From NCBI RefSeq assembly GCF_000143415.4, contig NW_003314306.1, positions 232,029 through 296,028 of the forward strand: 64,000 nt of DNA, in the 5' to 3' direction. Source of the stretch: Selaginella moellendorffii (lineage: Eukaryota; Plantae; Lycopodiophyta). Both the position numbers and the translations under genes were made by a program. Numbering within the stretch: the first letter of the stretch is position 1; every line of letters starts with the position of its first letter. Shown here in pieces: positions 8,651 through 63,700 of the stretch. Below the pieces are notes generated by a model that was given only the letters and a program-made list of their open reading frames with translations, was not told the DNA's origin and did no database searches.

Positions 8651-8884
8651 TCACAAACGCTTTGAGCACAACTTCCATCCCGATTGTAGGTAGAGCTCAA
8701 GACGGACCAAGACGTGTCCAGTTAGTAAGTCGTTAAACGGGTACACAAGCCGGTTTGATGGGACCACATACCGGTTCATCACAACCACACCAGAATGTTT
8801 CCTGGCCGACTCAAATACCGGAGGTGCACTGCAAGTGTAAACCATTGCCAAGAGGAAGGTCATCAAAATAAAGAGCCTCGTCAT
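8651..8884 (-). pseudogene. Shortened paralog (77 aa) of the orphan secreted protein at 21148-21654
   Basis: Signal peptide MTRLFILMTFLLAMVYTCSA and motif PSNRLVYPFNDLL match the 21.1 kb ORF; upstream DNA is also similar. Confidence 0.6.
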
Positions 8885-9399
8885 TGAAAATCCAATAGAA
8901 TGTAAGGGTTTGGTATCATTGTTATGACAAAGTGATTTCCTCTTTTTTGTTTTGCTGAAAATATACTTTAGAGTTCTCTTTTGTTTTGCTGGAATTACTT
9001 CCAGTAAAACAAATGCCAAGAATTTCTTGTTAAGTTGGAAGGGGATGGGGACAAGAACAGGACCTGGAACTCTTTCAACAATGCCCTTCACATTGAAAGG
9101 TAGAATCTTTGTTAGGTTAGTATTGTCATTGAATCAATATAAGCAAATTTATTTCCTTTTCCATAGTTTATGTTCTTACATGTCTATTTAAAAAATGCTT
9201 TGGAGATGTGACACCGTGATATTCAGCCTCCAAAACTTGAGCCATGTAGTGGAGGAGCTTGACAGCGAATAAGGCAGTAAATGGGGGAATTAAATCCAGA
9301 GTGTGAGATGGAGAAAATTTGCATGGCATTATATGGTTTTTCTTGTTAAATGGCATTTATGAAAAAAAGAAAGAAATTGGGTGAAAACTTACTAAATAT

Positions 9400-21147: not shown

Positions 21148-21654
21148 ATGACAAAGCTCTTTAGTTTCGTGATCTTTCTCTTGGCAATGGCTCTCACTTG
21201 TAGTGCAGCTCAGCAGGGTTTGTTTAGGTTTTTGCTCGACTACAACTTGCTCAGTGTAGCGCAGGTGAGAGAACTCATGGTCGAAGTGCTCAATCGTGTC
21301 CGGAACCACCGCAACAACCTGGCGATAGTGGGCGAGCCAATCACGTGGGTTGCTACGCTTGCGGAAGACGTGCGGGTGTGGGTGCAAGTCCGAGTGATGG
21401 ACGAATTTTGGCATGAAGATCGGGATGGAATATGCTCCACCCCATCAAACCGCCTCACGTACCCGTTTAGAGACTTACTGAACAGTGTTTTAGAAATGAC
21501 TGAGTCAGTCAGGGAGCAGCTCATTGATCGGGAATTCTGGTACGGCTATGTGGAAGTTGTGTTCCAGGTGTTCGGGATAGTATATCGCATCGAAAGGGAC
21601 AGGAGCCCTAGAACTTCAAATACTGAGCTCTTTAGACAATGCCCTATACATTGA
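21148..21654 (+). CDS. Orphan small secreted protein, 168 aa, intronless
   Basis: Intact ORF with a hydrophobic signal peptide MTKLFSFVIFLLAMALTCSA, CpG retained in an otherwise AT-rich setting, and a paralog at 8651-8884. Confidence 0.7.
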   Translation: MTKLFSFVIFLLAMALTCSAAQQGLFRFLLDYNLLSVAQVRELMVEVLNRVRNHRNNLAIVGEPITWVATLAEDVRVWVQVRVMDEFWHEDRDGICSTPSNRLTYPFRDLLNSVLEMTESVREQLIDREFWYGYVEVVFQVFGIVYRIERDRSPRTSNTELFRQCPIH

Positions 21655-41043: not shown

Positions 41044-44000
41044 TTAGTTAGCTCCAAAAGTTTTCTGCAACTCAGCAATAGTAAGGCTTGCTTGGTATAT
41101 ATGAATATCCACTTTAGGATCCTGGTGCAAGATGTTGATGAAGATGTAGTACATATGCTTGTAAGGAGCATATGCCTTCCCATGTTCCTCGTGCTTCGTA
41201 AAGTCTGGACATGTGCAAGAAGGAAAGTCGTGAATGGCAATTGTGTACTCTCCACCTTCTGTTTTGACTACGTACTCATTTGCAAGTGCAGTGATGTACT
41301 TCATGGAGAGAATCTCACACTCAAGTGTTTGAACCAAGTTTATTTTACCTTGCTTCTACTTGAAAACGGTACCAATAAATTTAACTGCCTTACCTTTTCA
41401 TGCTGGCCTCCTATGCATCTCTGTAGGAATAATCTTGGTTCTGTCACTCATGTCTCCAATTCTCCTCTCAAGATTGAAACCAGATTTCTCAAGGTTTTCA
41501 ATCTCATCTAAGGTGAGTGTGACCCCATTAGCAACCGGCCATTCTTTAGGTACTGCATCAGGTTTAGTCACTATAGTGTCTTTAAGCCGCTTCGTATGGT
41601 TGGCGTCAGTGTTGCAACAATATAGTTAGCACCAATCTCAAAAATCCTGCTTGCTTTTGTTCCCCATAAAAATATGGGGCTGGAACAGAAGCAGATTTGT
41701 CACCACGAATCCAGGCCCAACACTTGCCCCTCGGAAGCATCCCCACACACCTTATATTTAATTTTGCTGGCACGCGTCGGATTGCCCATTGCTTCGGCTC
41801 CATGCTACGATAAACAATTTCAATTTGTTGTGATGCACTCTCTTCATCAGCCACTTGAGGTGGCTCATTCCGAGAGTGGTGTTTTGGAGCAGAATGGTAC
41901 TCGACATCAGGCTTGTGAGAGCTTTCGCTCCAAGGTCCGTACCAACATCTTCCCCAGCAAAGGAAAAATGACGCTTTGAGCAGACAGTCTTCACCAACAG
42001 AAGCTCGGGGAGTGTACTCCATAGATATGCCACAGACCACTTTCTCAACTGCAGTTGCCACTATTTGGACAGGTGGAGTTAATTTTCTCTTCATCCTATC
42101 ATGTAACATCTCAATAGAAGGCCTTGTTCCCATGTATCTTCCTTCCTTGAATGCCAGTGCTTTTGAAGATTGCTTTATAGCACGTATCAAATCTTATAGA
42201 TAGGCTTCGTATATACTCATCTTCCCTTTCCCTGCCTCAGAGGAACGCCAACTCCAGTGCTTACTTTCGTAGAGATTCACAGTTGGGGTGTATGCGAGGT
42301 CTTCAAGTGGTTGATCCTAATGGAAAAGGCAATATTAAGAGGTAATAAAAGGAGAAGAAAAAATAGAAACCAACCTGAAAAGAGTGATATCCCCACTAGA
42401 ACATCCTAACTTCCCACCATCCTAACCATGACTCAAGTTGTGGTAGGCAACTTACGTCTATATGGCCATCTTCATGCCACCACATTCAGATCTCGTTTGC
42501 TTTTGCTTCATGCTCTTTTTCAGAAGGTGCAACTTGCAATTGTTTGCACAACTCCTTAAATATTGATTGAAACTCTGGCTTGATAAGGTGGCAGTGCTGG
42601 TTTAGGCTTTGAGCCCAATGGAACTCACAAGTCCTCTCACGACCTTCCAATGGCTGACCATTCCCAAAAACTGCTCGAACACCATTCCAGTTTGCACCAG
42701 CCCCATCTGCCATGAAACTGCAAAAGTTTACAAGCTTACCAGTCCGCTTTAGGACAATATCGGAGAGGGACTTCCAAAATATTTTCTGTGTTGTTTGGTC
42801 TTGTACTTTAAACTCTGTTGTCGCAATTGTTAAGTTACAACGTAGCCTATGAAAACACAAATATTACAACAATTTCAATATAATGAGAATAAAAATTACT
42901 TTGGGTCATATATATGAGCTTCCATGGTTGTCCAACCTGATACACGCTCCGTATGGTCAAAATGTACCCATGTATTTGCAAGGTCACTAGACCCAAACAT
43001 GTCCATTCGAGAGACAAGATCTACACTAGAGGCAGGGCCCATGGTAGACATTTTGAAGACGAAGGAGCACTCTTGCTCATTCACAACTTGGTCTGGAAAA
43101 AAATTTCTGTGGATGAACTCGTATGGACAGGTCTATTTCAATTCAAGGATGGAGTCAATTTTTGATTGCAACTTTCCCTCTCAAGATTCATACATCCAAG
43201 ATTTTATCCTAAAAAATATAATATAAGAAAAAATTATTATTATAACATATGAAATATAACGGATGTACCTCCTTAAGCTAATAGGAGGTTGTACTCCTCG
43301 TAGTAATTCTTGCAAGCTAGCCTCGTTTAGTTGAGTCTTTTGGCAACCTGGATTGAGTAAAGTGTTTGCAATAAAATTCTTGAGGACGGTCTTCTGAACA
43401 TGCTTTGGAGTTGTAAATGAGTTTCTCATAGTCTCTTTTTGCACAACATCTTTAAAATAGTTGAGAGAACTCCTTTGTATCCCTTCCTGTATTGGATGCA
43501 TGTGTGTGCCAACATGCACTGTAGGTCTTCCAACCACTCCATCCCATGAAAGAAAGTAGTACATCTTGGCCTCGCAAATAGCATGACATAGAGGAGAATT
43601 TTTGCAGAATCAACACTTGAATCCAACAGCAATGGTGTCACAGGTTAGAAGATTGACTGTAGACCCTTCAAAAAATATAGAGTTTCTACAGCGGTCTCGA
43701 TTGCATGCTTCATCTATACAATCTAAATGCCTACCACAATAAACTATAGACACTATGCCTTCAAAATGTTGGAAGTGTGTGGTTTTGATCTTGCACAAAT
43801 TGTGGACATCTTACTTGGTTTCCATCCCCTTTCGTTTGGAACCTGTGTTGCTAACAAGAGGTGGTAGCTTGAAGAAAATGTTGCCGTTGTAGGAAGATGG
43901 AAGCTCACTCACAAGCCTATACAAAAACAAGTGCACGTCGATTGAGAGGCGTGAAAACTAGAAAGCATTGCTAACGGCTTTGAATATTGTTGAAGTTGGA

Positions 44001-44191
44001 GCTGAAGCTAGAGCTGGAGCTGGTGAATTTGGCACCGACACTAGCATGACTTCTCCACTTGAACTAGAAGAGGATGAGAAGATAACAACTGACTCTTGCT
44101 TCACATTCATTTTGGTTGGAGTGCATTTGGCATTTTGACTGGAGATCCAAACACTCGAATCTCCTTCGACTTGGAATTTTGTAAATCCCAT
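41044..44191 (-). pseudogene. Mutator/IS256-superfamily DDE transposase with N-terminal Cys/His region and C-terminal SWIM finger; spliced, with stops and frameshifts
   Basis: WVHFDHT (D1), FMADGAGANWNGVRAVF (D2), TCEFHW (CxxH), TVNLYESKH (E), SWIM-like SCTCPDF..APYKHMYYIF. Confidence 0.85.
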
Positions 44192-45271
44192 TGTTGTCCA
44201 CCCTCGCCCACACCAGAAAAAAGAAACTCCAAGTATGCAACTATACCGGTGTCATTGCGAATCACAGCCTCTAAAGAAATAGAGCCAAGACGAAGATCAA
44301 AACGCCGACATAAAAAACTTTCAGAAACAATACTCTGAGAGAATGAAAGAGGTGGGTGATCTCAAAAATGAAGAAGAAACCTTTCCATCATTCTCAATAG
44401 GTTTTAGAGTTCTCTCTATTTATGCTACTTGTAAAAATCCATAGTGAAACATAATTGAAATTTAAATAGAGTAATAAGAAGATAACATACAAAATGAATT
44501 TAAATTCTATAGCAAATTTAACATGTTCAAGTGTGACAGTATTAATATTACTGTCATCTATTATAATGTCTGATGCATGTATACATATAGATCCAAGGAA
44601 GGATTTTCAGCACGTGAAGTTTGATAGTTAATAATGATACCAGTAATGACATTCTGCTATAGTGTGTTAAAAAAAGAGATCCAATCTGACTGTCAGTATG
44701 TGTGATATATCAAGTTGTCAAATTTTAAGTGGTAGATGATAATAAATCTTGATAATAAATCTTGTCAAATCTTATTCTTCACTGACAGATTTTATTTGTA
44801 GTACAACTCAAGTTTTATCTATAATTGTGAACACTGCTCAATGACATTTAAAGCACGTGTCTATTGTTTAGGATCTAATACAACACACAATAAATTTCTG
44901 GATGAGGATTCATCTATTCATAAATGGATATAGTACAACATATTTTAACATGCCTTATTTATACTCTTTAAAGTTCTTGTAATAATTCCACAATATGTAC
45001 AAAATATTGATGAGAATGCATCCTTTCTAGATAATTTATAAAATATAATATCATATCTCTAATAACAGAAATGTTGATAGGTGCTAGTTATATCATCATT
45101 AAAATATACAAAATAAAGAAGCATAATTTACATATAATAATAATGATAAGATAAAATAAAATCAAAGATATTGTGATGGTTGAGATTTAGGTTATTCGGA
45201 ATGAATGGCCAGGATGAGAGATTGGTTAAGGTTAGGGCAGCCATCAGGTTAACGTTAGGTTACTATTCGAA

Positions 45272-45465
45272 GAGATTGAGAGATTGAGCACGAAGGAGAT
45301 CGAGGGATTGAGCACGAAGGAGATTGAGGGATTGAGCGCAAAGGAGATCAAGGGATTGAGCGCAAAAGAGATTTAGGGATTGGGCGCGAAGGAGATCAAG
45401 CAATTGAGTGCACAAGAGATCGAGAGATTAAGCGTGCGAGCAGGAGAGATTGAGCACACAAGAAA
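45272..45465. repeat. 24-bp tandem repeat, about 7 copies, just upstream of the ParB-MTase ATG
   Basis: Unit GATTGAGCACGAAGGAGATCGAGG with variants. Confidence 0.85.
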
Positions 45466-45488
45466 TCCAGCACGATCAAGAAGGAAAG

Positions 45489-48400
45489 ATGCCACCAAGG
45501 GTGAGTTTCAATTTGATTGCTTCCACTTCCATTTTTTTCTTGCTTCTTTCTTGATTGCTTCTTTAGGGCCAGCCACCTCAGGCAGTTTTTCTGGCCGAGG
45601 GGCCAAGGTTATTTGAATAACCTTGGCCCCTCGAATGGCCAAACTGCCCGAGGTCAAGTTTGGGCCGGCCACCTCGGGTAGTTTCGCTGGTCAAGGGGCC
45701 AAGGTTATTTGAATAACCTTGGCCCCTTGGCCGAAAAAAAATGCCCGAGGTCGAGCCCGGGCCGGCCACCTTGGGTAGTTTGGCCACCCGAGGGGTTAAG
45801 GTTATTTGAATAACCTCGGCCCCTCGGCCAACAAAACTGCCTGAGGTGGCCAGCTCGGACTTGACCTTGGGCAATTTGGCTGTTTGAGGGGCCAATGTTA
45901 TTGAAATAACCTCGGCCCCTTGGGTGGCCAAACTGCCCAAGGTTGAGCTTAGGCCGGCCATCTCGGGCACTTTGGCTGCCCAGAGGGCTGATGTTATTCA
46001 AATAACCTCGGCCCCTCCGGCCCCTAAAGTGCCCGAGGTCGAGCTCGGGTTGGCCACCTTAGGCACTTCGGTGGCCGAGGTGGAGTCTAGGCCCACTTGA
46101 TTTTTTTTTTCTCTTTGACTGTTTGAATTTCTCATTATTTTTATTTAGTTTGATTAACAAAATTTTTTCTTTTGTAGAAAAGGAAAATTGTAACATATAA
46201 AAAGGTTGTTGGAGCCAAGAAGACATGAAAAGTTCAATTCAGCACTGACGATGACATCATGATTGACATGTCCATTGGCACAATAGAGACACATTTAGTT
46301 AGAGATTCACCACCTCCACCACCATCACCTCCACCATCACCACCTCCATCACCGCCATCGCCACCTCCACCACCTCCATCACCACCTCCACCACCAACAT
46401 TGCCACCGCCACCACCAGCATTGCCACCACCACTGCCACTATTGCCTCCACCCCTGCCGCCACTGCCACCACCACCACCTCCACCATCACTACTGCCACC
46501 TCCACCTTTACTCCTCACTAGCCCACCACCAGTGCAAATCTCTGAAGTTGGACAATCTAGTGGTGTTCACGATAAGGAACATGAGGAACAGTCTGGAGCT
46601 GAAAGAGTTGCAGACCTTCCTGACAACGTAGTGGACAAGCGCTTCCAAAAGATTGTTATGCGGATAAGGGAAAAAACAGTTCACCAAACACTTGAGGCGC
46701 TCAAGTGGCTAGGCCCTTGTGACTTGATCAAAGAAATCCCCCTTTGTCATTTGCAGTAGATGAACTTTGTCCGCACAACATCCAAGTATGTCAACCCGGA
46801 TATATATAGCTTGTTCAAACAGAATGGCCTTGCAACAAATATCAATATGTTTCTAGTCTCTTTTTGCAAGCCAGGAACAATGGAGATCATTACCGTCACA
46901 CCCGAGATTGTGAATAGCTGGGATCCTATTTAGAGGAGGAAGTCCCTAGAATTTTATGACATGCTTATTAGACATCCTAAGACTTGACAACTTGCGGGGA
47001 TAATGTTCCAAATTATTGACGGTAACCACCGATATGGAGCTTGGATGAAGTGTATCGACGATCATTTTTGCGATGATCCCGTCTACCATATCAATGTTCC
47101 AATCGGCTATGTCTATGCGAGGGGACCTTTGGATGTCAACAGACTTATCTTGGCCTGCCAAAAGATTAATGCGTAAGTTTTATAGTTTTACCTCTAGCTC
47201 CACTTTAACTTGTTTTGTTGTGTTTAAATGTAGGCTTGGGCAGTTCGCTGTTCAGAAACAAAACCTTGTCCATGACATCGAGTAACTTCAATTTTTAGCA
47301 GACTTGAGTGAGGATGACATCTGCCAACATTATGGTGATGATCTCGCAACACTTGTTCGGCACTCACACACTCGAAATGATGGTACAACTTGGTTCAATA
47401 ACCCAATCAATTTTATGCTCGCTGTGTGGTGTAAGGTATGTCTTTCCCTTTTTATTTTATAAAAGCCTCTTTTAATTGTTTTGGTTTTTAGGCTTTGATG
47501 AAGGTTAAGCAAGATGCTTACAAACTTGCATATCCGAAGAAGAGTTGGGAAGAGCTCTCAATTGAGTTCGTACAAATTAAGCACAAAATTCAGCATGCAA
47601 AGTCCTCAAAGTTGAAGAAACTAATATGCAATCGCAAGCCGAAGGAGTGGCTAGAGACTATAGCCAAAATTTCTTCTTATGAATGTAAGTTTCTTATCAC
47701 ACTTCATTTTTCTCAATTATGCATATGTTATTTTTGTAGTGAACAAAACTCCAGATGACATGATTTACAATATCACAAAATCAAAGCTTCTATATAAGTA
47801 ACAGATAGAGACTCTAGAGTTCCTCAATGTTTGTTTGATGAATAGAGAGAAAGGACTACCAGAACTATTTGAGAACATAATGAGAAGGGTTGTCTACATC
47901 ACGCAAACTATAAGTGAAGGTGAGAAGTTCTTGGCACCACACATTAGTGACGATCCAGATGGCACATTCATGTCTTTCGACACTTATATCAACATGTCAT
48001 TAGAAGGGATTGAAGAGGGGTGGCTGCCAGAGAAGTCTACAAGTATAACAATTTATGATTGCCAACATGGTCAGCCTTATTTCATGCGACGTGCAGCTTA
48101 TAGGTATAATATAATTTCTAAGATTGTTTTTTAATATATATTATTTACAGGTATCTTCGATAGAGAGGCATGCCATTTGAGGCACCAGTTTGCACTCGAC
48201 TTGTTGCAAAAGGTGTAATGGATAGAGGAATGTACCCAACAATATTTGAGAGAGTTCCGAAGGCACGGAAGATAGAATGCCCTTGGGAGTTGGAGCTCAT
48301 AGGGAAGGAGACCTCTACACTAGATCACAAGGAAGTTATCAATGCTAGCAACAATGGTAATGCAAGTGACAATGGAGATGAGGATAAAGAAGCTCCAGAT

Positions 48401-49748
48401 CAAGTTCGTGTTCCACCATCAGACAGCCAGGATCAGGCTCCAGTTCAACCATCGAACAACCAAGATTCGGATTAGGTTTTACCAGTAAATAACGATGATC
48501 AAGTGGTTCACAGAATATCACATCGACCTCGAGGTAAGCAAAAGTGAATTTTACAAACTAAAGGTGGTAATACATGTTTTTTGCAGCAATGACTGTTGAA
48601 TTTTATTCCATCTCGACAAGATGCTCATGAAGAGGAGTTGGAGGAACTCTCATCGACAACACACCATATGATGGTAGCATACTTATTACTTTTTTCATTC
48701 ACTTAGCTCTTTTATAAGTTTGTCTTGTGTCCCCAATAACACAACGAGGCATTATGGGTATCTTCATTGGCTCTTACAGTAGATTGTTGACATCTTTCAT
48801 GGAAGATGACATCAATATGGATATACAGCGCCAGTTCAATTGTTGGTGCCGAAAGATACAAAGGCCTTTGCTCCTAGTTGCGGACGTCATTCTCTTCGAC
48901 TTTCTAGATGGTCTTTCAGATATCGATGGGAAAGTTGAGGATTAGAACTTTCTCACACCTGACCATGTGTGCAATGCATTCCTATTGTCCGAAGCATTTA
49001 TGCTCGAAGCTAGCCATGTCGTTTTCATCCTACTGAATAACCCCAATTGGATGTATGAGCTTATGACGTGCACAACAGAAGTTCATTTCAAGTCATTCTC
49101 TTCCAGGTGCATCATGGATCCTATTGGTGTCAATACGAGGGGTGTCCAAGGGAAGCCTGAAAAGGTGAGTATGTATATTTTTATCTAATTTCTAAACATT
49201 TTTATTTTCTAGGTTATGATGTGGACTTATCATGCCTTTTGCAGCGAACGTGCAACACGTGTTTTGCTTGGGTACGACAGTTCCACTAACATCATACCTA
49301 ACTTTGTGGATGAGCAAATCTGCAACACATTTCCAAAGTACCAATTTTGAGCTCCATCGGCAATGCAAGTCTTGCTTTGCCCACCAGATGGTGTTGTGAT
49401 TAATTGCACAGCAGGTAGTGGTTCTATGGTGGAGCCAGCACGTGACTTTGGTAGGTCGGTGTTTGCTATTGAAGAACATCATTTCCTCAAATGCCGGCTT
49501 AGAGGATTTCGTGAGTTGCCTCCAACTTCAAGGAGGTAAATTATGTTTATTAAAATTTCAATATATGTTTAATTCTATTTTATAGATCACAGTCACCTGG
49601 ATTTTCTAGAATTGAAGGCTTTGGAAGTCTTCCTGACTATGCAGAAGCCATGGCTCAACATATGCAAGGTGAATCTTCCCCACAATACCAATATAGGAGG
49701 AAGTATAAAAGAAATCATTATGTTGATGATGAGGCAAAAGAAAGTTAA
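45489..49748 (+). pseudogene. Spliced gene for a ParB/Srx-like domain fused to a beta-class N4C/N6A DNA methyltransferase-like domain; several in-frame stops
   Basis: Exon 1 ATGCCACCAAGG|GT (45489-45500) splices in frame to 46178, giving MPPRKRK. Then a poly-Pro tract, FQIIDGNHRYGAW (DGNHR 47018-47032), ADVILFDFLDG (about 48880-48912), CPPDGVVINCTAGSGSMVEPARDFGRSVFAIE (about 49378-49473), and the end YVDDEAKES* at 49748. Confidence 0.7.
45565..46095. repeat. 96-bp-period array of alternating palindromes and inverted repeats, 5 units
   Basis: Perfect 18-bp arms CGAGGGGCCAAGGTTATT-tg-AATAACCTTGGCCCCTCG at 45596-45633; palindrome centres near 45614, 45710, 45807, 45903 and 45999. Confidence 0.95.
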
Positions 49749-50057
49749 TTGCATCCTTACATAAAATGGAAAGCTTGTTATATGTTAGATATTAGTGAAA
49801 GTGTCAGATGTCAGTAAAATTGTCAGATGTCAGTGTCAATGTCAGATATCATAATTGCAGATTATCATTCTCACCTGTCACCATCACTTTGTAGCGCTTG
49901 TGTGTTGCCATCTCCTCCTTCAACATTTTGTAAACAATTGTATATGATATGATAGCACCTTCTAGAACAAAGTATGTTACCTACAACTAATATCATTTTA
50001 TTATATTTTTTCTTTTAATAGTGAAAATACTATAGTATAGTAAAGTAATTTTAGATC

Positions 50058-50603
50058 TTACATTCCACTGTAGGGTGGCCTAAAAACCCCATATTTTGCA
50101 TTAGCCGATGCAATGTTTCCCAAAGGGATGTTGTTCCTCACCATAAAGCGATAGTGGGTATGTGTCCATAACTCATTCTTGAATCTATTGTACATCCACA
50201 CATGCACATTTTCCAGACCCGCCGTTGAGCAATTCCTACAGTGCTCAAGAAAAGTTTGTAAACCTATAGAGCCATTTGTCTTGTCCAAGAAAAAGTAGCA
50301 TATTGGACACCAAATGTAATAGCATTTTGTGCTTTCAAGTAGTCCCACCATATTAGGAGCAAGATCTTGCAAAAACATGTGGTATTGCTCTTGAAGCGCT
50401 GGAGGCAATCCCTCTCTAGTAGCAAGATTTGAAATTTCACATATAGGGAGCTCTAGTTCAACTTCACTAGAACCCTCAACAGAAAAAAAATTGTTATGTG
50501 GAGGTGAAAGTGGAATATTGGTAGAACTTGAGGATGGAGGTGGAGATTGATATGAAATGCTGGGGGGCTAAGTACAAGTAGCAATGACTCTCCTTTGAGC
50601 CAT
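50058..50603 (-). pseudogene. About 180-codon gene with a Ser/Pro-rich N-terminus and a putative Zn finger; one in-frame stop
   Basis: ATG at 50603 is in frame with ORF 50058-50408; YIWCPIC..FLEHCRNC..H pattern. Confidence 0.5.
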
Positions 50604-51617
50604 TTCAATACAAACTTCTAAGGAGCTCAAAGAGAACAAAAAACCTATGATAACTATAACTTTTCTAGATAGTTTATATACTAAGTTTTAGTCTTGAGAA
50701 TGAGGCTTATTTATTATGACACTGACAATACTCAGATTCTTTAAATGTCAGTCTTGGAAATGAATCTTCATAATCATAGCTTTCTTGTAAACATAAGAGC
50801 TTCTAGAATTTTAAATTATCGTGTATACACATGCTCTATCATTATGATGAATCCTACTTTACTACATATATATTCTTTTCTACACATGCCAAATGTCTAG
50901 GGAAATAAATTGCAAGGAAATATAGACCACATTATAGTGGTAAAGCACGTTGGCACGCTACCATTCTCTCATGTGAAATTGCCTTTCAATTTTAGAATTC
51001 ATGTGAGAATTTTAAAGGTTGATCAATTTTATATGCAAGATCTTCCTTTAGGAAGAAATCTCTTATAGCCATATCAACTTCTCGTTTAGGGGTTTCTTGA
51101 TTAAGTACTTCTTTGAGTATTGAATATAGATCAACTTCTGAAATTGGCTCAATTTTAAGGAAAACTTATTATTCTTAGAAATCATTTAAGTCTTCCTCCC
51201 GATCATAATATTGAGTTTTAAAGGGTTGATTTTTCTTTTCCAACTATATAGTGGAAGTAATGGGCATAGATATTTTCTGGTTGCCCTGTTCTATACACAA
51301 GAAATCATTTTTATAATATTGGTTTGTGCAAGCAATTTTTATCCAAGGTCTGCTTAGTAGAGTTTTATAGGTAGAATGTTGTCGTGTCATTTTAAACACA
51401 ACATAATTGAGTTTGTACTTTAAGTTAGCTACATTGATTAAAACATTTCTAATAATTCCAATAGGCCTGACATTTTAGTCATTAACCATTTGTACATTAT
51501 ATAGTGTTGGTATAATTGGGCCTAGGCATAATTCTTTGCAAATACACTCTTCTAAAATATTCATACTTAAGCCATCATCAATAAGAGTTTTAGATAATAG
51601 ATTCTTGCCAATCTTTA

Positions 51618-54600
51618 TGTAAGCGATTAATTTTTCCATTCTACTTTAGTCACTTAACCGCACCTCTGACCATTTGGAGGAGTCTCATTCGCAACCTCCA
51701 TAAGTCCCATTCAGAACTTGGGGCTTGCTAGCCCCGCGAATGGCATCCACGCCACTCAACTTGTACACTTGGTCCAAGTGCTTCACATGTCCGATCCCAT
51801 GACCGACACCCCAAAGTACCACTGACATACCAGCCCGTTACGCTAGGCCATGCCCATCCACCTTGGTCACGTCGGTGGTCCAACACCACTTGCATTACAA
51901 TCCCGTCTCTCAAAGACTAGGCCATGCATCCATGAGTGGCTATCCCAGATCCACTCCATAGCATCCTCAGGATGCCTGCAGACATGGGGAATTATAGCCT
52001 TCCCCAATGTCTCCTTTCCGGTCCCCACCAAGTCCCTTCCTGTCCATGGTTGTGTTCACCAACACTGCCACTGGATCAAGGCCCACAGGCCCGACCACTA
52101 AGTCCAACTGTCCTCTGGGACTTTCTCACTGTGTGACTCGGTCCCTTGTCACCACACTAGGGGGCTGCTCCTCTTTCTTTCCACAGTCTGGGACTTTGGG
52201 GCAACATTTTGGAACACCGTGGCCCTACGCGGGCCTCGTGGGTACTCTCTTCGCCTTCTGCCTTTGGGTGCTCTAGCCATGGGCTTAGAGCGAGGTTCCG
52301 TTAAGCCACACCAGGTATCCAAGTAGGTAGTGCCACCCACACTTGGATTGGGAGCATTGGCCAGTTGATCTCCCGGGGGAACTAGAGCCGGCTCTTGAAC
52401 ACTTCACCAAGCTACCCCATTTGTCGGTCCGTGTTCACTCTAATCTTGGACTTCCTAGTGGGCAGGTCATCACCCAACACTGGGTCCGGCCTTCCTGGGC
52501 CAAACTGGCCTTTCCTGGCCAAACTGGCTCCACTGCAATCCTCCCCCTACTATACTTTTGGAGCTCACCAAACCCCCCAGGGTCTGGGAGACGAACGCTT
52601 TGGGCTTTCACCCTCTCAGACTCGAACTCAGACTCGGACTCAGACTTGGACTCGGACTCGGACTCAGACTCAGACTTGGACTTGGACTCGGACTCGGACT
52701 CGGACTCGGACTCGGACTCGGACTCAGACTCTGACTCGGGCTCGGTCTCGACCTCGGCCTTGGTCTCGGTCTCGGTCTCGATCCTGATCTCGGTCTCGGT
52801 CTCGGTCCCGATCTCGGTCTCGGTCTCGGTCCCGATCTCGGTCTCGGTCTCGATCCCGGTCTCGGTCCCGGTCTCAGTCTTGACTTCGGACTCCATCTCA
52901 GGTCCATTTCGGACTCCATCTCGGGTCCATCTCGGACTCCACCTTGGGTCCATCTCGGGCTCCATCTCGGGTCCATCTCGGGTCCATCTCGGACTCCATC
53001 TCAGGTCCATCTCGGACTCCATCTCAGGTCCATCTCGGACTCCATCTTGGACTTCATCTCGGGTCCATTTCGGACTCCATCTCGGACTCCATCTCTTGTC
53101 CATTTCGGACTCCACCTTGGACTCCATCTCGGGTCCTTCTCGGACTCCACTTCGGACTCCAACTCGGGTCTATCTTGGGTCCATCTCGGACACTTCCACG
53201 TGTCATATGTTGGTCCTTTTGGGTCCCTTTTTGGAGCCTCACTTATTGCTCGCTTCGTGCTCATTCCTCAAGCACTTCGTTGGGAGTTCCACTCCCACTC
53301 TCAACCTTTTCAAGTCGGAACTTTTAGTCCAAACGTGTTACGTTCATTTGGCTTTCGCTTCGGCCACTACCACGTGTCACCCTTTTAGCTCCACTTTGGG
53401 GCCTAGGGATTTTGTGTCTCACAACTCCACCACCCATAGACGAAGTTCGATGTCCTCATCGAACGATAAACTATTTTATAAAGTAATACCAACTTGTATT
53501 ACCGTTTCCATCTTTGGCCCCTCGCCAATATTTGTCAATGGTCTAATATTGAAGGCTCACCATGCCTTCCCCATCCTCTAAGGAGTGTAGTCTCTCCAAC
53601 TTAGAGACTGATTGGACCACTTGTGGTGGTTTTCTCCTTTTTATTGGTTTAGTTCTCACTAAACTTGTTAGAGACACCTTCTCTAACTCAATCCCACTAC
53701 TCATTCTCGAGTGGTCTCACTTTCCATTGATATAATCCTTGCACTTTGGAACCTTTTAATTTTGACTTCTCAGAGTCAATTTCCTAGGTGTCTCTGACAC
53801 CTTACGTTGCACATGGTGCAACTCCACTTCCTGTCCTAGGAAATTCTTTATTTGAGGGCACCATCATCCTCTCTTCGATATTGTGCCACCCTTGGCACTA
53901 AATTCCAGCTATTGTAATTTGTGCTAGGGTTGTCTATGGCCCTATCATTTGGCTACTTTACCACTCCATCCCTTGGAGCTTCCCCCTTCGCCAAATCAGA
54001 GCAATTGGGAACCTATCCTTGGAAACACATTGCTTTCCAATAATCTGTTATCATTTAACACATTAGTGTTCTTGGACTAACTTTACCATTTGGCTTCTAT
54101 CTCATGATTCCCATAGCCTTTTTCTTAGCCACTAGTCTTTTGCTCCTATCCTTGATTGTTGCACCACGCAACACAGAATCGTCACCTCCATTCTCGAGGT
54201 ATTCTTTCAATTCCATAGCAAAGACTTTGCTTTGCCAAGTCTAGAGGGTGTTCACCCTTAGTATGTCTCCTTAGCATTTTTTTGCTATGGGCTCTATTAT
54301 GGCCCAACTTTGAGACCCTCCGATGGATCTCTTATAGAGACTACTTTCCTCAGACTTATTATGCCATTGCATTGACAGCTCATTTCCCTTAGGTGTTCCT
54401 CCCACTTGGTCACCTTGACCAAGCCACACCATCATCAATAGTTCCAATCAACACTTTGAACTTGGAATTTTATCCCTTAACCTCACAAGGACCTTGTCTT
54501 TGTTTTAGCCATAAGATCATCTAGTGATCTAACCTTGGCCCCTTAACAGGTTTGCCAATACATATTAGGTTTTCCCGACCTTTAAGTTGTTCACCATGAC

Positions 54601-57600
54601 CCTGGGGGCATCCCCCACACTTGGCGGTGCACCCAAGCCAGCCCTTTCGGCCAAGGGTCCATAACAACTGAGACTAGGTGTCCCCATCTCATTCACCACG
54701 ACCTTGGTGCCACTTGCACCAAAGTGTTCAAGTTAGATATGCTGAGCTTTCACACTAAGCAATCCAACCGTATATCACGACTTCGAGGCATCCCTCGCTT
54801 GGCGGTGTGCCCAAACTAGTCTCCCCACTAAGAGTCCATGACCACCAAAATATAAGTGTCCTCATATTCCAAACCATCACCACGCCCTAGTGAGTTGGGA
54901 CTCGAACCCAAGCACTAGAGGGTCGGGACTCGAACCCAACCTCCATATACACATCTACGGATGGCATCACATAGGATGCCTAGCGTGACTCCCCACACCG
55001 GTGCACTAACTTATACTTAAAATGCGCTATAGATCACCGCTTAGGAACTTAATTCCTTCACACTGCCAAGTTTTCTCACTTGACCAGTCTGTGATCATGC
55101 ATGGACTCCTCCATGTTTGGCCCCATGGGCCACCCCTTTGAAGTTGGCTCCTTCAACTAGGGTATTCATTCCCCTGACTTGCCAATCTCACTTAGCAAAT
55201 CATCCGACCACTGTAACATGGTTCATGCATAAGCGTGAAAGTCCTTAACTATCGACTTTCGTTCAAAGCCCTCTCTTTGAATACTCGGGAACTACTTCTC
55301 TAATCTTGATAGCCTCGCCTCATGGCAAGCTTCAAGACTACGCTTCTGCTGCGCCACTCTAATTTCGCGCACTCTATAAACCATTTACACTTGGATGTCT
55401 AGGTACTTATCTACCTAGGGGAACGTTCAAGGAACTCTGTTCCTTAGCTTGCTAAGGTCTTTCCATTTGCAAGCTTTCCAATTACCATATAGCCTAACAT
55501 GGACAATCCCATACTTTAGACTTTCCATGGCATCCCGGTCGCTAGTAACAACATGCTTGAGCACCCACTTGATTTTCCACTCCCAACTTGCATAACCACC
55601 CTTGATCATGTCTGTCCGCCCAAGCTAGCTGGGAAAACAAAGTTACATTTCACTCTAACCTCTTCAGACTAACCACCCTTTTCAGGCCCATCACTAGCCT
55701 TGCCAAAATCCCCTTTTTGGCTTTGTCTAATTTGGGTAAACGAACTTCTCTCGTCTCCGCAACCTTGGACATTTGGATAGCACATCCTATCCATCATTCA
55801 CTAGGGACTTTGTCCCTTGGGCATTATCCATTGCCCTCATGCCACCAAATACCACCTTCTGGTGTTCTAGAGTGTTTGGGTGTCCCAATGATGGTCTCTT
55901 TTTGACAATGAGCATTCCCCTTTCGACATTGACTTACTATATCGCAACATAAGCAATTTATCCCCCATAAAGGTATATCTAACTTCCTTATCCCAATAAG
56001 AAGTCTTAAGTAGTTGCCTTTTACTAGTTTAACAATTTATTTTGCATCTTTTGCTTAGTTGCTTTATAGTTGTCAAGTTCTACAACTCATTGCTGGTGCT
56101 TCCACACCTCCATCATTATCTGGGTCACCACACTCTAACCGCATGCCTTCCAGCATAGGCTATGCTATTCCCATTTCCATTGGGATTCCTTTAGAATGGG
56201 TTCTCATAAACCCGCCAACTTGACCTCAAGGCAACACGCCTTGGCACATTCGGTGTCTCCACACCATTGGCTCCACGAGCCTACCTTTATGACACTTCTT
56301 ACTAGTGTCTAGGTCTTTTTGCCAAGACCAATATGGTTGTCTCTTATGCCAATTATCCATTAGCATTGCACCATAGAGTTCACGCACAACTTTGCATCAA
56401 AGTTGTTTTCTTCCGGGAAACTCCTTCTCACGACTTTAGCGTGGCACCTTCTGCCATCAATGAGATACACACTGCTCTCATGCTTGTATCTCAAGATCCT
56501 CCCCATCCTTCGTGGGGCACCACACACCTCAGTCCAAATGCTTTCCTCAAGCCTTTAGAGGATTATACCTTGACTCTATTAGAGTCATTCAACTTTTTGG
56601 ACTTTGTTAATCCGATGACCCATGAGGTCCTACCTTTGAGGTGCTAGCTCATTGGAATACAACTCCTTGTATTCATGTCCTACTCCAAGGACCATCTTTT
56701 GCAAGTGTTACTCCGACACTCGATTTTTTCTCTAGGGGCAACCTTTCGCCCCTTAGGACCACTTGTCCATGTGATGAGAATACCAACTCATCCTCTAAGT
56801 ACACCCCCAACTCCTTGGGTTGTTCCAGCATTTATTAGAGGTAGCCCCGGCTACCATTTCAAGGACTTGTGTCCTCTTCCGTATTTGACCTCCCATGGTC
56901 ATCAATTTCGGTCTCAAATTTATGAGCACTAGCCCCAACTATATGAGGGTAATCTTGTGACTCCTTTATTGTTTTGGAGTCTGCATCTTGCCCGTGATCC
57001 CAACGATAGTTGTTTACTGCTGCGTCAAACGCTCATTTGGATCACATCCTCAACTCTCTAAGGAAACCCTTACATTGTTCCCAAGATCCCAAAGTCGTTT
57101 CATTATTGACCCTTTTCTATCCACCACGTTGTCTACAAGTTCACACATGAACTGTAATGGAGAGCCATGTCTTCCCGACCTGCTACTCCTCAAGGATAGG
57201 CCCACTCCTCGGACCTTTTGATGCCAACACCAGTGGTGATATACTTGAGCACCAATAAAAGTCGGACTAAGGAACAGCTCCGATACCAATTTGTAAGCGA
57301 TTAATTTTTCCATTCTACTTTAGTCACTTAACCGCACCTCTGACCACTTGGAGGAGTCTCATTTGCAACCTCCATAAGTCCCATTCAGAACTTGGGGCTT
57401 GCTAGCCCCGCGAATGGCATCCACGCCACTCAACCTGTGCACTTGGTCTAAGTGCTCCACATGTCCGATCCCATGACCGACACCCCAAGGTACCACTGAC
57501 CAACCCGTTACGCTAGGCCATGCCCATCCACCTTGGTCACGTCGGTGGTTCAACACCATCTACATTACAATCCCGTCTCTCAAAGACTAGGCCATGCATC

Positions 57601-58769
57601 CATGAGTGGCTATCCCAGATCCACTCCATAGCATTCTCAGAATGCCTGCAGACATGGGGAATAGCCTTCCCCAATGTCTCCTTTCCGGTCCCCACCAAGT
57701 CCCTTCCTGTTCATGGTCGTGTTCACCAACACTGCCACTGGATCAAGGCCCACAGGCCTGACCACTAAGTCCAACTGTCCTCTGGGATTTCCTCACTGTG
57801 TGACTGTGTCCCTTGTCACCACACTAGGGGGCTGCTCCTCTTTCTTTCCACAGTCTGGGACTTTGGGGCAACATTTCGGAACACCGTGGCCCTACGCGGG
57901 CCTCGTGGGTACTCTCCTCGCCTTCTGCCTTTGGGTGCTCTAGCCATGGGCTTAGAGCGAGGTTCCGTTGAGCCACACCAGGTATCCAAGTAGGTAGTGC
58001 CACCCACACTTGGACTGGGAGCATCGGCCAGTCGATCTCCCGGGGGAACTAAAGCTGGCTCTTGAACACTTCACTAAGCTACCCCACTTGTCGGTCCGTG
58101 TTCACTCTAGTCTTGGACTTCCCAGTGGGCAGCTCATCACCCAACATTGGGTCCGGCCTTCCTGGGCCAAACTGGCCTTTCCTGGCCAAACTGGCTCCAC
58201 TGCAGTCCTCCCCCTACTATACTTTTGGAGCTCACCAAACCCCCCAGGGTCTGGGAGACGAACGCTTTGGGCTTTCACCCTCTCAGACTCGAACTTGGAC
58301 TCGGACTCGGACTTGGACTCGGATTTGGACTCGGGCTCGGTCTCGGCCTCGGCCTCGGTCTCGGTCCTGATCTCGGTCTCGGTCTCGGTCTCGATCCTGG
58401 TCTCGGTCCCGGTCTCGGTCTTGACTTCGGACTCCATCTCGGGTCCATCTCGGACTCCACCTCGGACTCCATCTCGGGGTCCTTCTCGAACTCCACTTCG
58501 GACTCCAACTCGGGTCCATCTCGGGTCCATCTCGGACACTTCCACATGTCATGTGTTGGTCCTTTTGGGTCCTTTTTTGGAGCCTCACTTATTGCTCGCT
58601 TCGTGCTCATTCCTCGAGCACTTCATTGGGAGTTCCACTCCCACTCTCGACCTTTTCAAGTCGGAGCTTTTAGTCCAAATGTGTTACGTTCATTTGGCTT
58701 TCGCTTCGGCCACTACCACGTGGCCCCCTTTTGGCTCCACTTTGGGGCCTAGGGATTTTGTGTCTCACA
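51618..58769 (-). mobile_element. Two-LTR retrotransposon with a decayed internal region (probably Gypsy); LTRs 57292-58769 (5') and 51618-53423 (3')
   Basis: Both LTRs run TG..CA. The 5-bp TSD CTTTA is at 51613-51617 and 58770-58774. PBS TGGTATCGGAGC (tRNA-iMet type) is at 57277-57288 on the minus strand. A purine-rich tract adjoins 53423. Confidence 0.95.
52615..53190. repeat. GGACTC/GGTCTC hexamer and CCATCTCGGACT 12-mer arrays inside the LTR
   Basis: Directly visible; shorter versions occur at 58285-58540 and 60110-60475. Confidence 0.95.
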
Positions 58770-59249: not shown

Positions 59250-60707
59250 TGTAAGTGACTAATTTTTCCATTTTACTTTAGTCACTTAACCACACCTTCG
59301 ACCATTTGGAGGAGTCTCACTCATAACCTCCATAAGTCTTATTCCAGACTTAAGGCTTGTTATTCCCGAGAATGACATCCATACCATTCAACTTTTGCAC
59401 TTGGTCCAAGTGCTCCACGTGTCTGATCCCATGGTCAACACCCTAAGGTACCACCGACATATTAACTTGTTATGCTAAGGCCATGCCCATTCACCTTAGT
59501 CATACCGGTGGTCTAACACCATCTGCATCACAGTCCCATCTCTAAAAAATTGGGCCATCTATCCATAAGTGATCATCCTAGATCCACTCCTTAGCATCCT
59601 TAAGATGCCCGCAGACATGGGGAATAACATTCCCCAATATCCCTTTTACAGTCCCCACTAAGTCCCTTTTTTATCCATGGCCATATTTGCCAACACTACC
59701 ACTTGGACAAAGCCCACAGGCCTAACCACTAAGTTCTATGGTTCTCTGGGACTTCTTCACCACATGACCGTATCCTTGATCACTACACTAGAGGATTACT
59801 CCTCTTCCTTTTCACAGTTTGGGACTTTGGGACAACATTTCGGAACACCATGGTCCTACACAAACCTTATGGGTATTCTCCCCACCTTTTGCATTTGGGT
59901 GCTCTAGCCATGGGCTTAGAGCAAGGTTCCATTAAGCCACGCCAGGTATCCAAGTAGATAGTGCCACCCATATTTAAACTAGGAGTATCGACCATTCGAT
60001 CTCCCGGGGGAACTAGAGTCGGCTTTTGGAACCCCTTGCAACCAACACCCCCCCCCCGCCTAGGGGACGATCACTTTGGGCTTTCACCCAACAATTTGTA
60101 TTAGTATTTGGACTCGAACTCGGATTCAGACTCGATCTTAGTCTCGGTTTTGGACTTGGACTCAGTCTTGGTCTCGATTCCATCTCGAACTCCATCTCAA
60201 ACTTCATCTTGAGTCTATCTCGGACTTCATCTCAAGTCCATCTTAGACTCCATCTTGGGTCCATCTCGAACTCCATCTCGAACTTCTTCTTAGACTCCTT
60301 CTTGGACTCCATCTTGGACTTCTTCTCGGACTCTATCTCAGACTCCATCTCGGACTCTATCTTGGACTCCTTCTCGAACTCCATCTCAGACTCCTTCTCA
60401 GACTCCATCTCAGACTATTTTTCAGACTCCATCTCAAACTCCTTCTCGGACTCCATCTCAGACTCTATCTTGGACACTTCCACATGTCATATATTGGTCC
60501 TTTTGTATCCCTTTTTGAGAGATTTACTTATTGCTTGCTTCGTGCTTATTTCTTGAGCCCTTTGTTGGGAGTTCCACTTCCACTCTCGACTTTTTGAGTC
60601 AAAGTTTTTAATTCATATGTGTTACACTCATTTGGCTTCCGCCTCAGCCACTACCATATGGCACCCTTTCGGCTCCTCTTTAGGGCCAAAAGATTTTATG
60701 TCTCACA
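59250..60707 (-). mobile_element. Older solo LTR of the same family as 51618-58769
   Basis: Collinear with the other two LTRs, TG..CA ends, no internal region; flanks GATAA and AATAG fit a decayed 5-bp TSD. Confidence 0.85.
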
Positions 60708-63700
60708 AATAGCTCTTCTATATTTGACCATTTTACCTCAACATACTTAGTTGCAAATTGCATATTCTTAAGAGGCCTATCATTTTTGCTTGAAAATTCA
60801 GATTGATTGTATGGCCTAGGATAGCAAGTAGGAGTTTTAATTTGATCATACTCTTTTAGCCTTTTATAATTTCTAGGCATAATTTATAGGTTGATCATAT
60901 TCTCTAAGCTGATTATAGTCTTTAGGCTTATTTTCCTCACAACTAAGTGAATAATCTGGAAAATTATCTCTATGCGGATAATCCTAATGGTCATCTTGCA
61001 TTTCAGTAAGTGGGTATTCATATTTAGTGTTTCGATTACATTCATCTTATAATAACTTTTATTGTCAAGTGGATAATTTTGCCAATGTGTTGTTTTATCA
61101 ACTCAGGTTGACTGTTGGCCTCCTAGTCATTTAAATAAGGTTCTACACTCCTTAGTTGAATACCCCTTTTTTTCACAAAATTGGCACTTGATCAACTAAA
61201 GTTTGCATTCTTCTTTATTATAGCCTTTATTTTTGCATTTGGTACACCAAATCCCTTATCTAAGATTGGTTTGCAATTTGAGGCTTTTTAAATGACTAGT
61301 TTTTTTATCTATAAAAGTTATCTTTTCATTTAACTTCACTATATTTACCATATTATATTTTTTTATAAGATCTTGGTAGGCAATCATGGTTTTTTTCAAA
61401 TCATTGAAATCTACATAAGCTCTCTTTATCGCATGTTCATGATAAATTTTTTTGAAGCCTTATATATATATGCGTAGGCATATTATATCTAACACTAAGT
61501 CTTTACAACGTTTATAGTGCTTGTTAAATCGAGTTGTATATTCCTCGATTGTTTCAAATTTTCTTTGATAAAGCTTTTGCAACTCATAATAGTTTTCTCC
61601 TAGATTTATTTCCATAGAGAAAGTTTTAAAGAAAGATTATTTTTATGTATTTTGCAATATGCAGTTATGGGTCCTCTTTTTTTATTTCAGAATAGGATAG
61701 ATATGTGATGGTGGTGCTTATTGCCGTTCCTGCAATTGCTATTGTGCTTATTTCAATTTGACAAAAAAACTCTGTTTTGTAATTACTATAGGTAAAATAG
61801 GTGTTTGGTTTGTAGAGGAACATAGATCACCTTTAAAGAGTAAGAGTTGTAAATTTAGCTCTTCTTCCTTTTGTGAGGAATCACTTTAGTTTTTTTGTAT
61901 TCCTCTACTCTCAGTTAAAGCAAAGGCATTTTCTATGTGCCAATACTACCAAAGAGGAGTAATGTATGGATTCACATATTCTTGATAACCATCAAAGTTA
62001 TATTGGGATTTTTGATTTCCTCTTTATTAAAGTGTACTCAATATGCTTTCAACTCGCTCTCTTTCGAATTTTTCTTTAACTTAGTTGAGCAATAATTTAT
62101 TCTGTTCTAAAGGGAGGTTAAGATTACAAATATCACGAGCAAGTGCTTTGTAATCTCATTCTAGATCTTGTGAATACTTCTTTTCAAACTGTTTTCCGTT
62201 CATTAAATTGTGAGGGAAATGTTATATATCTATTACCTTATTTAGTATGATAGTGACAATTTTATACATAAAGACTATGCCCTTTAAAGTTTTATAAGTA
62301 AGATTAATTGTTAGTTTATGCCTATATATTTCAAAGTTTGTTAGCATTGTTACTATGGCAAGCCTAGTTATTATGCCTTGTTCATGAAGTGAGTGGTACA
62401 AAGTTTTGGTATGTAATGTATTCTTCTTGTAAATTGAACTATTTGTCACTCTTAGAAGCAAACATTTAGCTTCCCAATCAATTTTAAAATAGGGATGGAT
62501 TTCCTCTAAAGGCTAAATGTCTAAGACATTTTTTATATGAAAGTCCTAAAAAAATTTTGAGCAACAAATGTTGTTTTTCATAGAGTATTTATCTTGCTTA
62601 GGTGTGGTCCACCTTAAGCTCTTTGGAAGTTTGTATTGAAAATGGCTCAAAGGAAAGTCACTACTGTTGGGGGAAGGAGGGGCGCCTCCCCCAACGCTCG
62701 CTCAAACACGAGAAATGCTTCACTGCTCTTTGCAAAAATGCCCCCCCTCGCCCTTGTAAGGCAAGGGTTTTATACAAGGAAGATGGGGAATATTCTAAGG
62801 ACCAGAATATTCCCTCTCTCTCTCTCACTCTCCCAATGGCCACGCCCTAACATGCGACCACGGTGGATCGCGCTGGCTCCAGACGCGCAAGAACCCTCCG
62901 AAGAGTGTAGAGTGTACCTCTGCTACTGATGCCAAGTGTTGGTAACTGCGTGAAATAGTAGAAACTCTAGAAAACAGGGTGGAAAAGAAAGAAAAGAGGT
63001 AGGTGTGAAGTTTGGAGACAGGGAGAAAACCCGGTGGGAAACTCTGTAGTCAAACTGGACCCTGAAGTTGAAGAAAAGTGTAGAAAAAGTGTGAAAAGAG
63101 GAGAAAAATAGAGGAAAAAGAACGTGAGTACCCAAAGAACTTAACCCGTACCTGGATTTCGGCTCAGGAAAGTGTAATATGCAAATGCAACCTCTTGATG
63201 ACTTCTGGTATGCTCCAAGGATTGGCCGAAATCAAGAAAGAAAGAGAGGTAGAAGAGGGGATGCGTTGCCCAAGGGTGGTAAGTGTGGAAATGATGAAAG
63301 ATGGAGTGATATGGTGGAGCGCCGAGATGGTGGTGGCACTCTGAAGTGGTAGCCATTGATAACCATTGGCCCGTAGAGTAAGCACTGACCACTCGGAGTA
63401 GCCGGTAACCGGTAGCCGGTAGCCGGGTACCTGTAACCTGTAACTGGTAACCACCTACTCTCGCTCCTACTCCTGCGCCAGCTCCAGCACCGATATGGTG
63501 GAGTGATATGGTGGAGCGCTGAGATGGTGGTGGCTCTCTGAGAAGGTGGCCAGGCTGATTTGTCGGACTGAAGAAGTCAGCAGCTGAAATGGACGGCATA
63601 GTCGCTGGGTTGCCGGTAAAGAGAGGTGGCATGTGTCCACTGAGTGCTGGAGCAGAAGAAAGTGGCTTCGGCTTCTGTGGCCTCGCCTAAAGATCCACCT

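Follow-up and report, generated by a model that had tools for sequence, protein, structure and literature searches.

Whether a decayed transposase gene and the unusual gene beside it belong to one mobile element, and what such an element carried, is the question raised by positions 41,044-50,603 of a 64,000-nucleotide stretch of Selaginella moellendorffii contig NW_003314306.1 (positions 232,029 to 296,028 of the forward strand; hereafter the window, meaning the whole stretch). An earlier note on this DNA had proposed a new transposon system of roughly 10 kb, in which a Mutator-type transposase is paired with a fusion of ParB and DNA methyltransferase (MTase) domains, a palindrome array, and a zinc-finger gene. 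We conclude, with a probability of about 0.72, that a large DNA transposon of the cut-and-paste type left a dead, heavily mutated copy here, comprising a DDE transposase, a divergent ParB-like/MTase-like gene (hereafter the accessory gene), and a palindrome array between them. Nothing in the window copy is functional: at least nine in-frame stops interrupt the transposase and at least four interrupt the accessory gene; being dead, the copy serves as a marker of its family rather than as a working system.

The transposase pseudogene occupies approximately 41047-44331 on the minus strand, where homology was recovered in collinear pieces broken by in-frame stops. Read from 44331 down to 41047, these stop-to-stop pieces comprise a Cys-rich N-terminal part (~43810-43440), a segment extending from FDHT, which supplies the first Asp of the DDE core (~43000), to GWTTMEAHIYD, a segment running from FMADGAGANWNGVRAVFG to RERTCEFHW, which contains the second Asp in FMADGAGANW followed by C-E-F-H (~42700), the Glu-bearing TVNLYESKH (~42270), and a C-terminal part from CTCPDF to APYKH (41047-41355) with a SWIM-like CxC...(Y)xH motif, all of which were read in translation. 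In a phmmer search of the full library, the 125-residue core piece (42489-42863) matched 179 proteins at E≤1e-3, the best at 2.7e-20 and with 43-46% identity. The pieces are collinear, by tblastn and tblastx, with full-length relatives at the loci L004, L006, L012, L013, L014, and L019 (L004 being a JGI contig that carries protein P0151 and a second open reading frame, ORF), and this in-order mapping identifies a real transposase homologue over the whole length. The sequence additionally contains at least one true intron, of 53 nt with GT-AG borders, at 42847-42899, the removal of which restores the reading of the relatives by joining HIYDPK to LRCNLTIATTEF, where the uninterrupted relative P0151 has CHVYDSKYCKVMTIAN. 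From its sequence, the window transposase is thus a once-spliced gene that is now a pseudogene.

Its superfamily is less sharply defined. Scans with Pfam and NCBIfam matched no model to any window transposase piece, and the family profile found nothing significant in the PDB. When 27 relatives were scanned singly, PF10551 (Mutator-like element, MULE) matched three of them, with a best E of 9.5e-4, and no other family matched more than one; PF10551 matched neither the window pieces nor the closest full-length relatives, P0151 and P0152. The SWIM domain PF04434 appeared once, at E 0.076 in the L004 relative, with no match in the window, where the CTCPDF...APYKH segment has a Tyr at the place expected for the third Cys of the SWIM pattern CxCxnCxH. 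A DDE triad with C-x2-H after the second Asp is present in the window (FDHT, FMADGAGANW...RERTCEFHW, TVNLYESKH), and the blocks are conserved in the relatives. Since the C/D-x2-H motif after the second Asp is also found in hAT, P, and Kolobok, it is not specific to Mutator. The window transposase therefore appears distantly Mutator-like, and is not securely a MULE. Of the description in the earlier note, the spliced DDE gene on the minus strand is borne out by the relatives and the intron, the C-terminal part is SWIM-like, and the label "Mutator-type" is weakly backed.

Two more distant transposase relatives, L001 (10001-15806) and L002 (10001-14446), share 28-31% identity and have an N-terminal OTU cysteine-protease domain; in both, a zinc-finger gene of C2H2/Di19 type comes next in convergent orientation, and no ParB-like gene is present. 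The nearly intact transposase of L012 has a long tandem array (4300-6600) on its upstream side, which on the minus strand gives a repeating reading of the GLGMQMRGPGAGIRIREGG type.

The accessory gene lies head-to-head with the transposase on the plus strand. Its first exon (46229-47173) is identified by tblastn, tblastx, a family of 78 proteins, and fold matches, and reads in a single frame from an ATG at 46259, with three in-frame stops, to a GTAAGT donor after 47173. A Pro-rich low-complexity N-terminus precedes a ParB/Srx-like domain that reads IKEIPLC...VR...WD..(stop at a Trp position)..EF...IIDGNHRYGAW...ILACQKINA, and the stops fall at Trp codons of the family. The family was reached through a tblastn match of the window exon in the flank of the transposase relative L003/L005 (E 8e-6), and its members come from dozens of large contigs in a single ENA assembly (ERZ25073694) and from metagenome contigs of JGI. 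Against the first exon of L013, the window exon scores E 6e-9, with 29% identity over 136 residues (tblastn), and it is collinear by tblastx with L013, L019, and the merged L003+L005 contig (M35r). The family is marked by the motifs EIPLC and DGNHR..AW, the latter within a nearly invariant W-D-G-N-H-R-x-x-A-W, of which the window version is IIDGNHRYGAW and which we take to be the D-G-x-H-R / G-x-x-R nucleotide-binding strand-loop motif of ParB/Srx. The ParB-like exon of L014 is interrupted by two in-frame stops (9845-9847 and 9989-9991) where P0248 and P0250 are uninterrupted, so decayed and apparently intact copies both occur in the JGI lineage. The poly-Pro/Ser tract of the N-terminus in the window is encoded by a CCA/CCT-rich microsatellite (46308-46506), which reads as poly-Gly on the other strand.

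The fold of this domain was approached with AlphaFold2 models of two family members, P0202 and P0250, which are ~50% identical to each other. In Foldseek comparisons with the PDB, sulfiredoxin, Noc, ParB, and KorB fill most top ranks for the first model, and the best 14 matches of the second are all of ParB/Srx fold (Noc, sulfiredoxin, PadC), with TM scores normalised to the target of 0.45-0.60 for the ParB/Srx matches of both models. Because the ranking is consistent and WDGNHR..AW is nearly invariant, we judge a ParB/Srx fold of the N-terminal domain to be probable from the models, though not proven. The ParB component proposed in the earlier note is a real gene with a real family, and its identity as ParB is suggested by motifs and by fold matches that are consistent and non-significant.

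That the transposase and the accessory gene form one element is indicated by their relatives. The window shares its layout, consisting of a transposase on the minus strand, a spacer of 2-7 kb, and a ParB-like/MTase-like gene on the plus strand, with three paralogous copies from one ENA assembly (L005, L013, and L019) and with the JGI contigs L014/L015. Between L014/L015 and L013, the ParB exon shows only 45% identity, and among the three lineages with this layout protein identity is down to 29-45%. Apart from one nested insertion, the paralogous copies align collinearly for 17-20 kb, at a nucleotide identity of 80-90%, across both genes and the spacer between them; they have a common sharp left end, GGGGGGGTATAACATGAGCTG, ~450 bp past the transposase stop (L013 750-770; L003 13423-13442 in the merged L003+L005 contig), and extend at least 6.5 kb beyond the final accessory exon, where no long ORFs occur. 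The conserved head-to-head layout, together with the 17-20 kb shared by the paralogues, establishes that the two genes belong to one element, and the window holds a real composite transposon remnant. The head-to-head pair described earlier thus recurs in three divergent lineages as a conserved linkage rather than as an independent occurrence of its parts; its two starts in the window lie ~1.9-2.0 kb apart, and not 1.3 kb as had been stated. The idea of a single element holds for the two genes, plausibly extends to the array, and is unsupported for the zinc-finger ORF.

What the accessory gene encodes beyond its first exon is read largely through the relatives. Its middle part (47286-48472, plus strand; open pieces 47286-47459, 47492-47755, 47802-48131, and 48164-48472) is assigned by position, and matched neither Pfam/NCBIfam nor the exons of the relatives. 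A candidate N-terminal half of the MTase-like domain (48718-49185, plus strand) was aligned by hand, without statistical support, to the exon of the relatives that reads VDLVIADMPEDL...PEWN or VHLLLVNQPSDTF...PDWN; it has LLLVADVILFDFLDG at the expected position of motif IV and one in-frame stop where the relatives have Trp. A candidate motif I region (DGVVINCTAGSGSMVEPARDFGRSVFAIEEHH; 49351-49536, plus strand), recognised by motif resemblance, keeps TAGSGS...GR..FAIEE with a canonical-looking G-x-G, and its best PDB match, to TRM61 around motif I (E 1.3), is non-significant, as is its match to the family profile of the relatives (E 3.7). Downstream of it, a short conserved segment (49629-49745, plus strand) matches L019 14160-14276 by tblastx, at 44% identity over 39 residues and in the same order as the other collinear matches.

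In the relatives, the last exon matched PF01555 (N6_N4_Mtase) over profile positions 170-218 of 221, with E values of 9.5e-5 (L014), 0.005 (L005), and 0.2 (L013), all three below the 26.7-bit gathering score, and a precomputed "weak" PF01555 match is recorded for L019. When a profile of this exon was run against the PDB, CcrM and DpnA came out on top, with E values of 0.3-0.8. The penultimate exon reads VDLVIAD... and then ...YLDDxGGL.L.MP, as a beta-class enzyme should in its N-terminal half, and the beta-class order, with the motif IV region before motif I, is seen in L013, L014, and L005, the window pieces being ordered alike. On this sequence evidence, the C-terminal domain looks derived from beta-class DNA amino-methyltransferases and catalytically degenerate, and the "MTase" of the earlier note is a reasonable reading of the window by position and motif, backed by the PF01555 matches of the relatives; the window copy itself offers a motif I-like string and is not detected statistically.

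If the accessory protein were instead an active DNA N6-adenine/N4-cytosine methyltransferase, targeted to the element by its ParB-like part, it could leave a self-mark, for example against silencing, a role that has been proposed for the algal proteins (PMC12477816) and that the earlier note had also raised. Matches to PF01555 at the end that binds S-adenosylmethionine (SAM), the first ranks of CcrM and DpnA, and the canonical-looking TAGSGS of the window all speak for such an enzyme. However, motif IV reads ADMPED in the JGI lineage (8 sequences), NQPSD in the ENA lineage, and ADVILF in the window rather than (D/N/S)PP(Y/F/W), so that no lineage retains the first Pro or the aromatic residue, and the profile of the motif IV exon found no methyltransferase in the PDB. 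Furthermore, motif I of the relatives has lost the glycines of F-x-G-x-G, with none left in L013, and the HP(T)xKP element of CcrM is replaced in the exon alignment of the relatives. The degeneration of motifs IV and I makes methylation activity doubtful, and we regard an active enzyme as unlikely.

Between the two genes, Tandem Repeats Finder and a repeat search located the palindrome array at 45566-46080, where 5.4 tandem units of 96 bp confirm what the earlier note had described. Each unit forms an ~80-bp near-palindrome or hairpin centred on GGGGCCAAGGTTATT TGAATAACCTTGGCCCC, and ~180 bp separate the end of the array from the accessory ATG downstream. Its core is confined to the array within the 64-kb window, with 0 matches expected by chance, and no exact match was found in the metagenome contigs. 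Just upstream of it in the divergent spacer, Tandem Repeats Finder reported seven copies of a non-palindromic 24-bp tandem repeat, CGAAGGAGATCGAGGGATTGAGCA (45268-45434). In the ENA lineage, a near-palindrome of the form TTCGG-YR-CCGAA (TTCGGNNCCGAA) occurs 13 times in L019 and nine times in L013, with 0 expected; it is placed once in each 171-bp unit of a tandem repeat preceding the accessory gene, five times at 25-bp spacing in accessory intron 1, and in pairs further on. Taken with the window array, these clusters place a lineage-specific palindrome cluster by the ParB-like gene in two of the three lineages, and the array at 45566-46080 is a candidate cis-binding array.

The array might also bind no protein, being a foldback or satellite insertion, or one resembling a miniature inverted-repeat transposable element, or a hairpin source of small RNAs that silence the element. 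Hairpins of ~80 bp greatly exceed the usual length of a pair of parS half-sites, the relatives do not have the palindrome sequence, and the JGI lineage has no repeated palindrome, all of which fit such an origin. Against it stand the position directly upstream of the ParB-like gene, which parallels both the TTCGGNNCCGAA clusters of the ENA lineage and the published inverted-repeat arrays next to PAG3 (bioRxiv 10.1101/2025.02.11.637652), and the occurrence of the core nowhere else in 64 kb. We find a non-binding array improbable and retain the candidate cis-binding array in the reading of the region as a transposon with its own accessory gene.

If a copy were active, the ParB-like part of its accessory protein would serve to recognise the palindrome array of the same element, by analogy with the binding of ParB to parS and of KorB to its operator, and TTCGGYRCCGAA and the palindrome unit of the window are candidate DNA targets of this domain. 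The bound protein might then mark the element DNA or, more likely, act as a sequence-specific DNA-binding clamp, a role favoured over marking because catalytic motif IV is degenerate. Such a clamp could govern the divergent promoter that both genes share, the chromatin of the element, or both. A more far-reaching version, to which we give a low probability, would see here a hitherto unclassified, widespread lineage of giant MULE-like elements reaching the streptophytes, with a fast-evolving self-recognition protein in which a ParB/Srx clamp dependent on nucleoside triphosphates is joined to a catalytically dead MTase that serves as a DNA- or SAM-binding module, lineage-specific palindrome arrays co-evolve with it, and the protein, as a clamp of the parS/KorB kind, controls the divergent promoter or chromatin rather than acting as a methylase. 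If this were true, a partition and repression module of the plasmid type would operate in eukaryotic nuclear transposons.

Several results weigh against the reading of the region as one transposon with a ParB-like/MTase-like gene and a recognition array. No Pfam domain was found on any of the 78 family members, the profile of the ParB-like family gave 0 PDB matches at E≤10, and the window accessory pieces matched ParB in none of Pfam, NCBIfam, and the PDB. The two AlphaFold2 models are of moderate confidence (pLDDT, the predicted local distance difference test, 61.5 and 64.5 for P0202 and P0250), and every fold match has an E of at least 0.12, none being significant at 0.001. Exon profiles of the relatives did not recover the MTase part from a six-frame translation of the window, Pfam and NCBIfam matched none of the window MTase pieces, and the departures of motifs IV and I described above, with the failure of the motif IV exon to find a methyltransferase, count in the same direction. 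Binding of the accessory protein to the array is something we purely infer, and a repeated palindrome was looked for in the JGI lineage and none was found. At L006, L011, and L012, a transposase occurs without an accessory gene in the available flank, a result that does not decide the linkage because the upstream flank there is at most 8.3 kb.

For the ends of the element, no terminal inverted repeats (TIRs) or target-site duplications (TSDs, of 8-11 bp in Mutator elements) were found in the window, by repeat search and word-7 blastn, or in the relatives, by flank blastn in L013, L014, and the merged L003+L005 contig. The boundaries are consequently undefined, and the size of ~10 kb given in the earlier note is not established. 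A fuzzy search covering 30 kb found no inverted copy of the left terminus GGGGGGGTATAACATGAGCTG, which points to TIRs that are very short or absent, or to a more distant right end, and TSDs are unreadable in the relatives because their right ends are not reached. Related elements extend to at least 17-22 kb; by analogy, the window element may be much longer than 10 kb, perhaps interrupted by a long terminal repeat (LTR) retrotransposon at 51.6 kb.

The zinc-finger gene that the earlier note had counted as a convergent part of the element is unsupported as a member. It is an open frame of 169 codons (50061-50567, minus strand) identified by a Cys/His pattern, C-x4-C-x2-C...H-C-x2-C, with no counterpart in any related locus and no supported family, its best matches being the NOB1 zinc ribbon in Pfam (E 0.4) and atlastin in the PDB (E 0.057). 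The C2H2 zinc-finger genes of L001 and L002 were considered as support for it and rejected, as they show no similarity.

Coincidental adjacency, with the transposase, the ParB-like gene, the array, and the zinc-finger ORF as unrelated neighbours or nested insertions, would accord with the missing common TIRs and TSDs, the zinc-finger ORF without counterpart, the mosaic of transposable elements implied by the LTR retrotransposon from 51.6 kb, and the transposases of L006, L011, and L012 with no accessory gene in their available flanks, but it is very unlikely and, for the two genes, largely refuted by the same order and orientation in three lineages at 29-45% protein identity and by paralogues that are collinear across both genes and the spacer.

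The region from 41 to 50.6 kb sits between an AT-rich stretch (guanine-cytosine content 0.26 at 38-40 kb) and the LTR retrotransposon that begins at 51.6 kb. Its presumed LTRs are two direct repeats of ~1.8 kb (51618-53423 and 57292-58769), which lie ~5.67 kb apart and share 95-97% identity; the retrotransposon bounds or interrupts the right side of the region; a third, more diverged copy lies at 59250-60595, and all three hold a hexamer array, (CTCGGT)n, and 23-bp microsatellite-like arrays. Around this cluster, an inverted repeat pair of ~50 bp, ~88% identical, lies at 50583-50636 and 62614-62665, 12 kb apart, its left arm directly after the zinc-finger ORF and a GGGGGG run at 50562; the pair could mark the termini of a different DNA element, as its TIRs, or be a short repeat present twice. 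Elsewhere in the window, which is nuclear DNA of plant type, ORFs of host type were named by reading their translations (rather than by search) as an aspartyl protease, an MRS2/CorA-type magnesium transporter, a 2-oxoglutarate (2OG) oxygenase, an NADH dehydrogenase of NDC1 type, and a cyclic-nucleotide-gated channel (CNGC). Runs of N, marking assembly gaps, lie at ~1400-2200 and ~19750-20270, the first of which breaks the aspartyl-protease-like gene. Two paralogous small ORFs (8651-9091, minus strand; 21073-21654, plus strand), with signal-peptide-like starts MT[RK]LF...LLAM..TCSA and a common SNRL.YPF.DLL motif, may be host genes for small secreted proteins.

Transposons with a DNA-recognition or DNA-marking protein of their own are rare, and they bear on how mobile elements escape or manage host silencing. 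The presence of this cassette in a genome with genes of land-plant type (CNGC, MRS2, 2OG oxygenase, NDC1-type) widens a host range that has so far comprised brown, red, and green algae, and it shows the cassette travelling with yet another transposase lineage. The comparative series of window, ENA, and JGI copies is also informative, since the ParB-like domain has been conserved in it and the catalytic motif of the methyltransferase lost, which suggests, at the level of sequence, that DNA binding rather than methylation is the selected activity.

Among known systems, VANC of the Arabidopsis VANDAL elements, which are Mutator-like, is an accessory protein thought to recognise repeated motifs of its own element and to change the epigenetic state of that element. 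Unlike the accessory protein of the window, VANC causes a loss of methylation and has no methyltransferase-like domain, and the two are unrelated in sequence and fold. Fusions of ParB with N6_N4 methyltransferase domains (PF02195 + PF01555) are typical of phages and also occur on plasmids. They resemble the window family in combining an N-terminal ParB fold with a C-terminal beta-class amino-methyltransferase on mobile DNA; whereas they are recognised by Pfam and keep DPPY, the window family is matched by Pfam at the motif I end only, contains introns, and resides in eukaryotic transposons.

The closest parallels come from algae, and in this light the "new transposon system" of the earlier note was overstated, as ParB-like/MTase accessory genes and inverted-repeat arrays were published in 2025 for transposons of brown and red algae (PMC12477816; bioRxiv 10.1101/2025.02.11.637652), the same papers also crediting green algae with the cassette. 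In Bostrychia, PAG3 combines a ParB-like domain with a 2OG oxygenase and lies adjacent to tandem inverted-repeat arrays, PAG2 combines an N6A methylase with SET, and the red-algal cassette is found with Plavaka, Zisupton, Mutator (Chondrus crispus), and Fanzor elements (bioRxiv 10.1101/2025.02.11.637652). Compared by description, the window family shares with PAG2/PAG3 an accessory gene with a ParB-like domain and an adjoining inverted-repeat array, and the red-algal cassette also includes an N6-adenine methylase; in contrast to those two separate genes, its own ParB-like and MTase-like parts belong to a single gene, and there is no conserved third gene. In Ectocarpus, the 21.5-kb transposon family Sola1-1_Ec32 has one accessory gene opposite the transposase, encoding a protein of 1104 residues with ParB-like and N4C/N6A DNA methyltransferase domains that is proposed to bind and modify its own element (Genome Biol 2025, PMC12477816). 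The window element is likewise, by description, a large DNA transposon with a ParB-like/MTase-like accessory gene on the strand opposite the transposase, but it differs from this Sola1 element of a brown alga in its weak MULE signal, its plant-type genome, and its degenerate MTase motifs. To a design already published for algal transposons, the window adds a host of plant type and one more lineage of transposase, as well as a ParB-like family that Pfam does not recognise and a methyltransferase that has degenerated.

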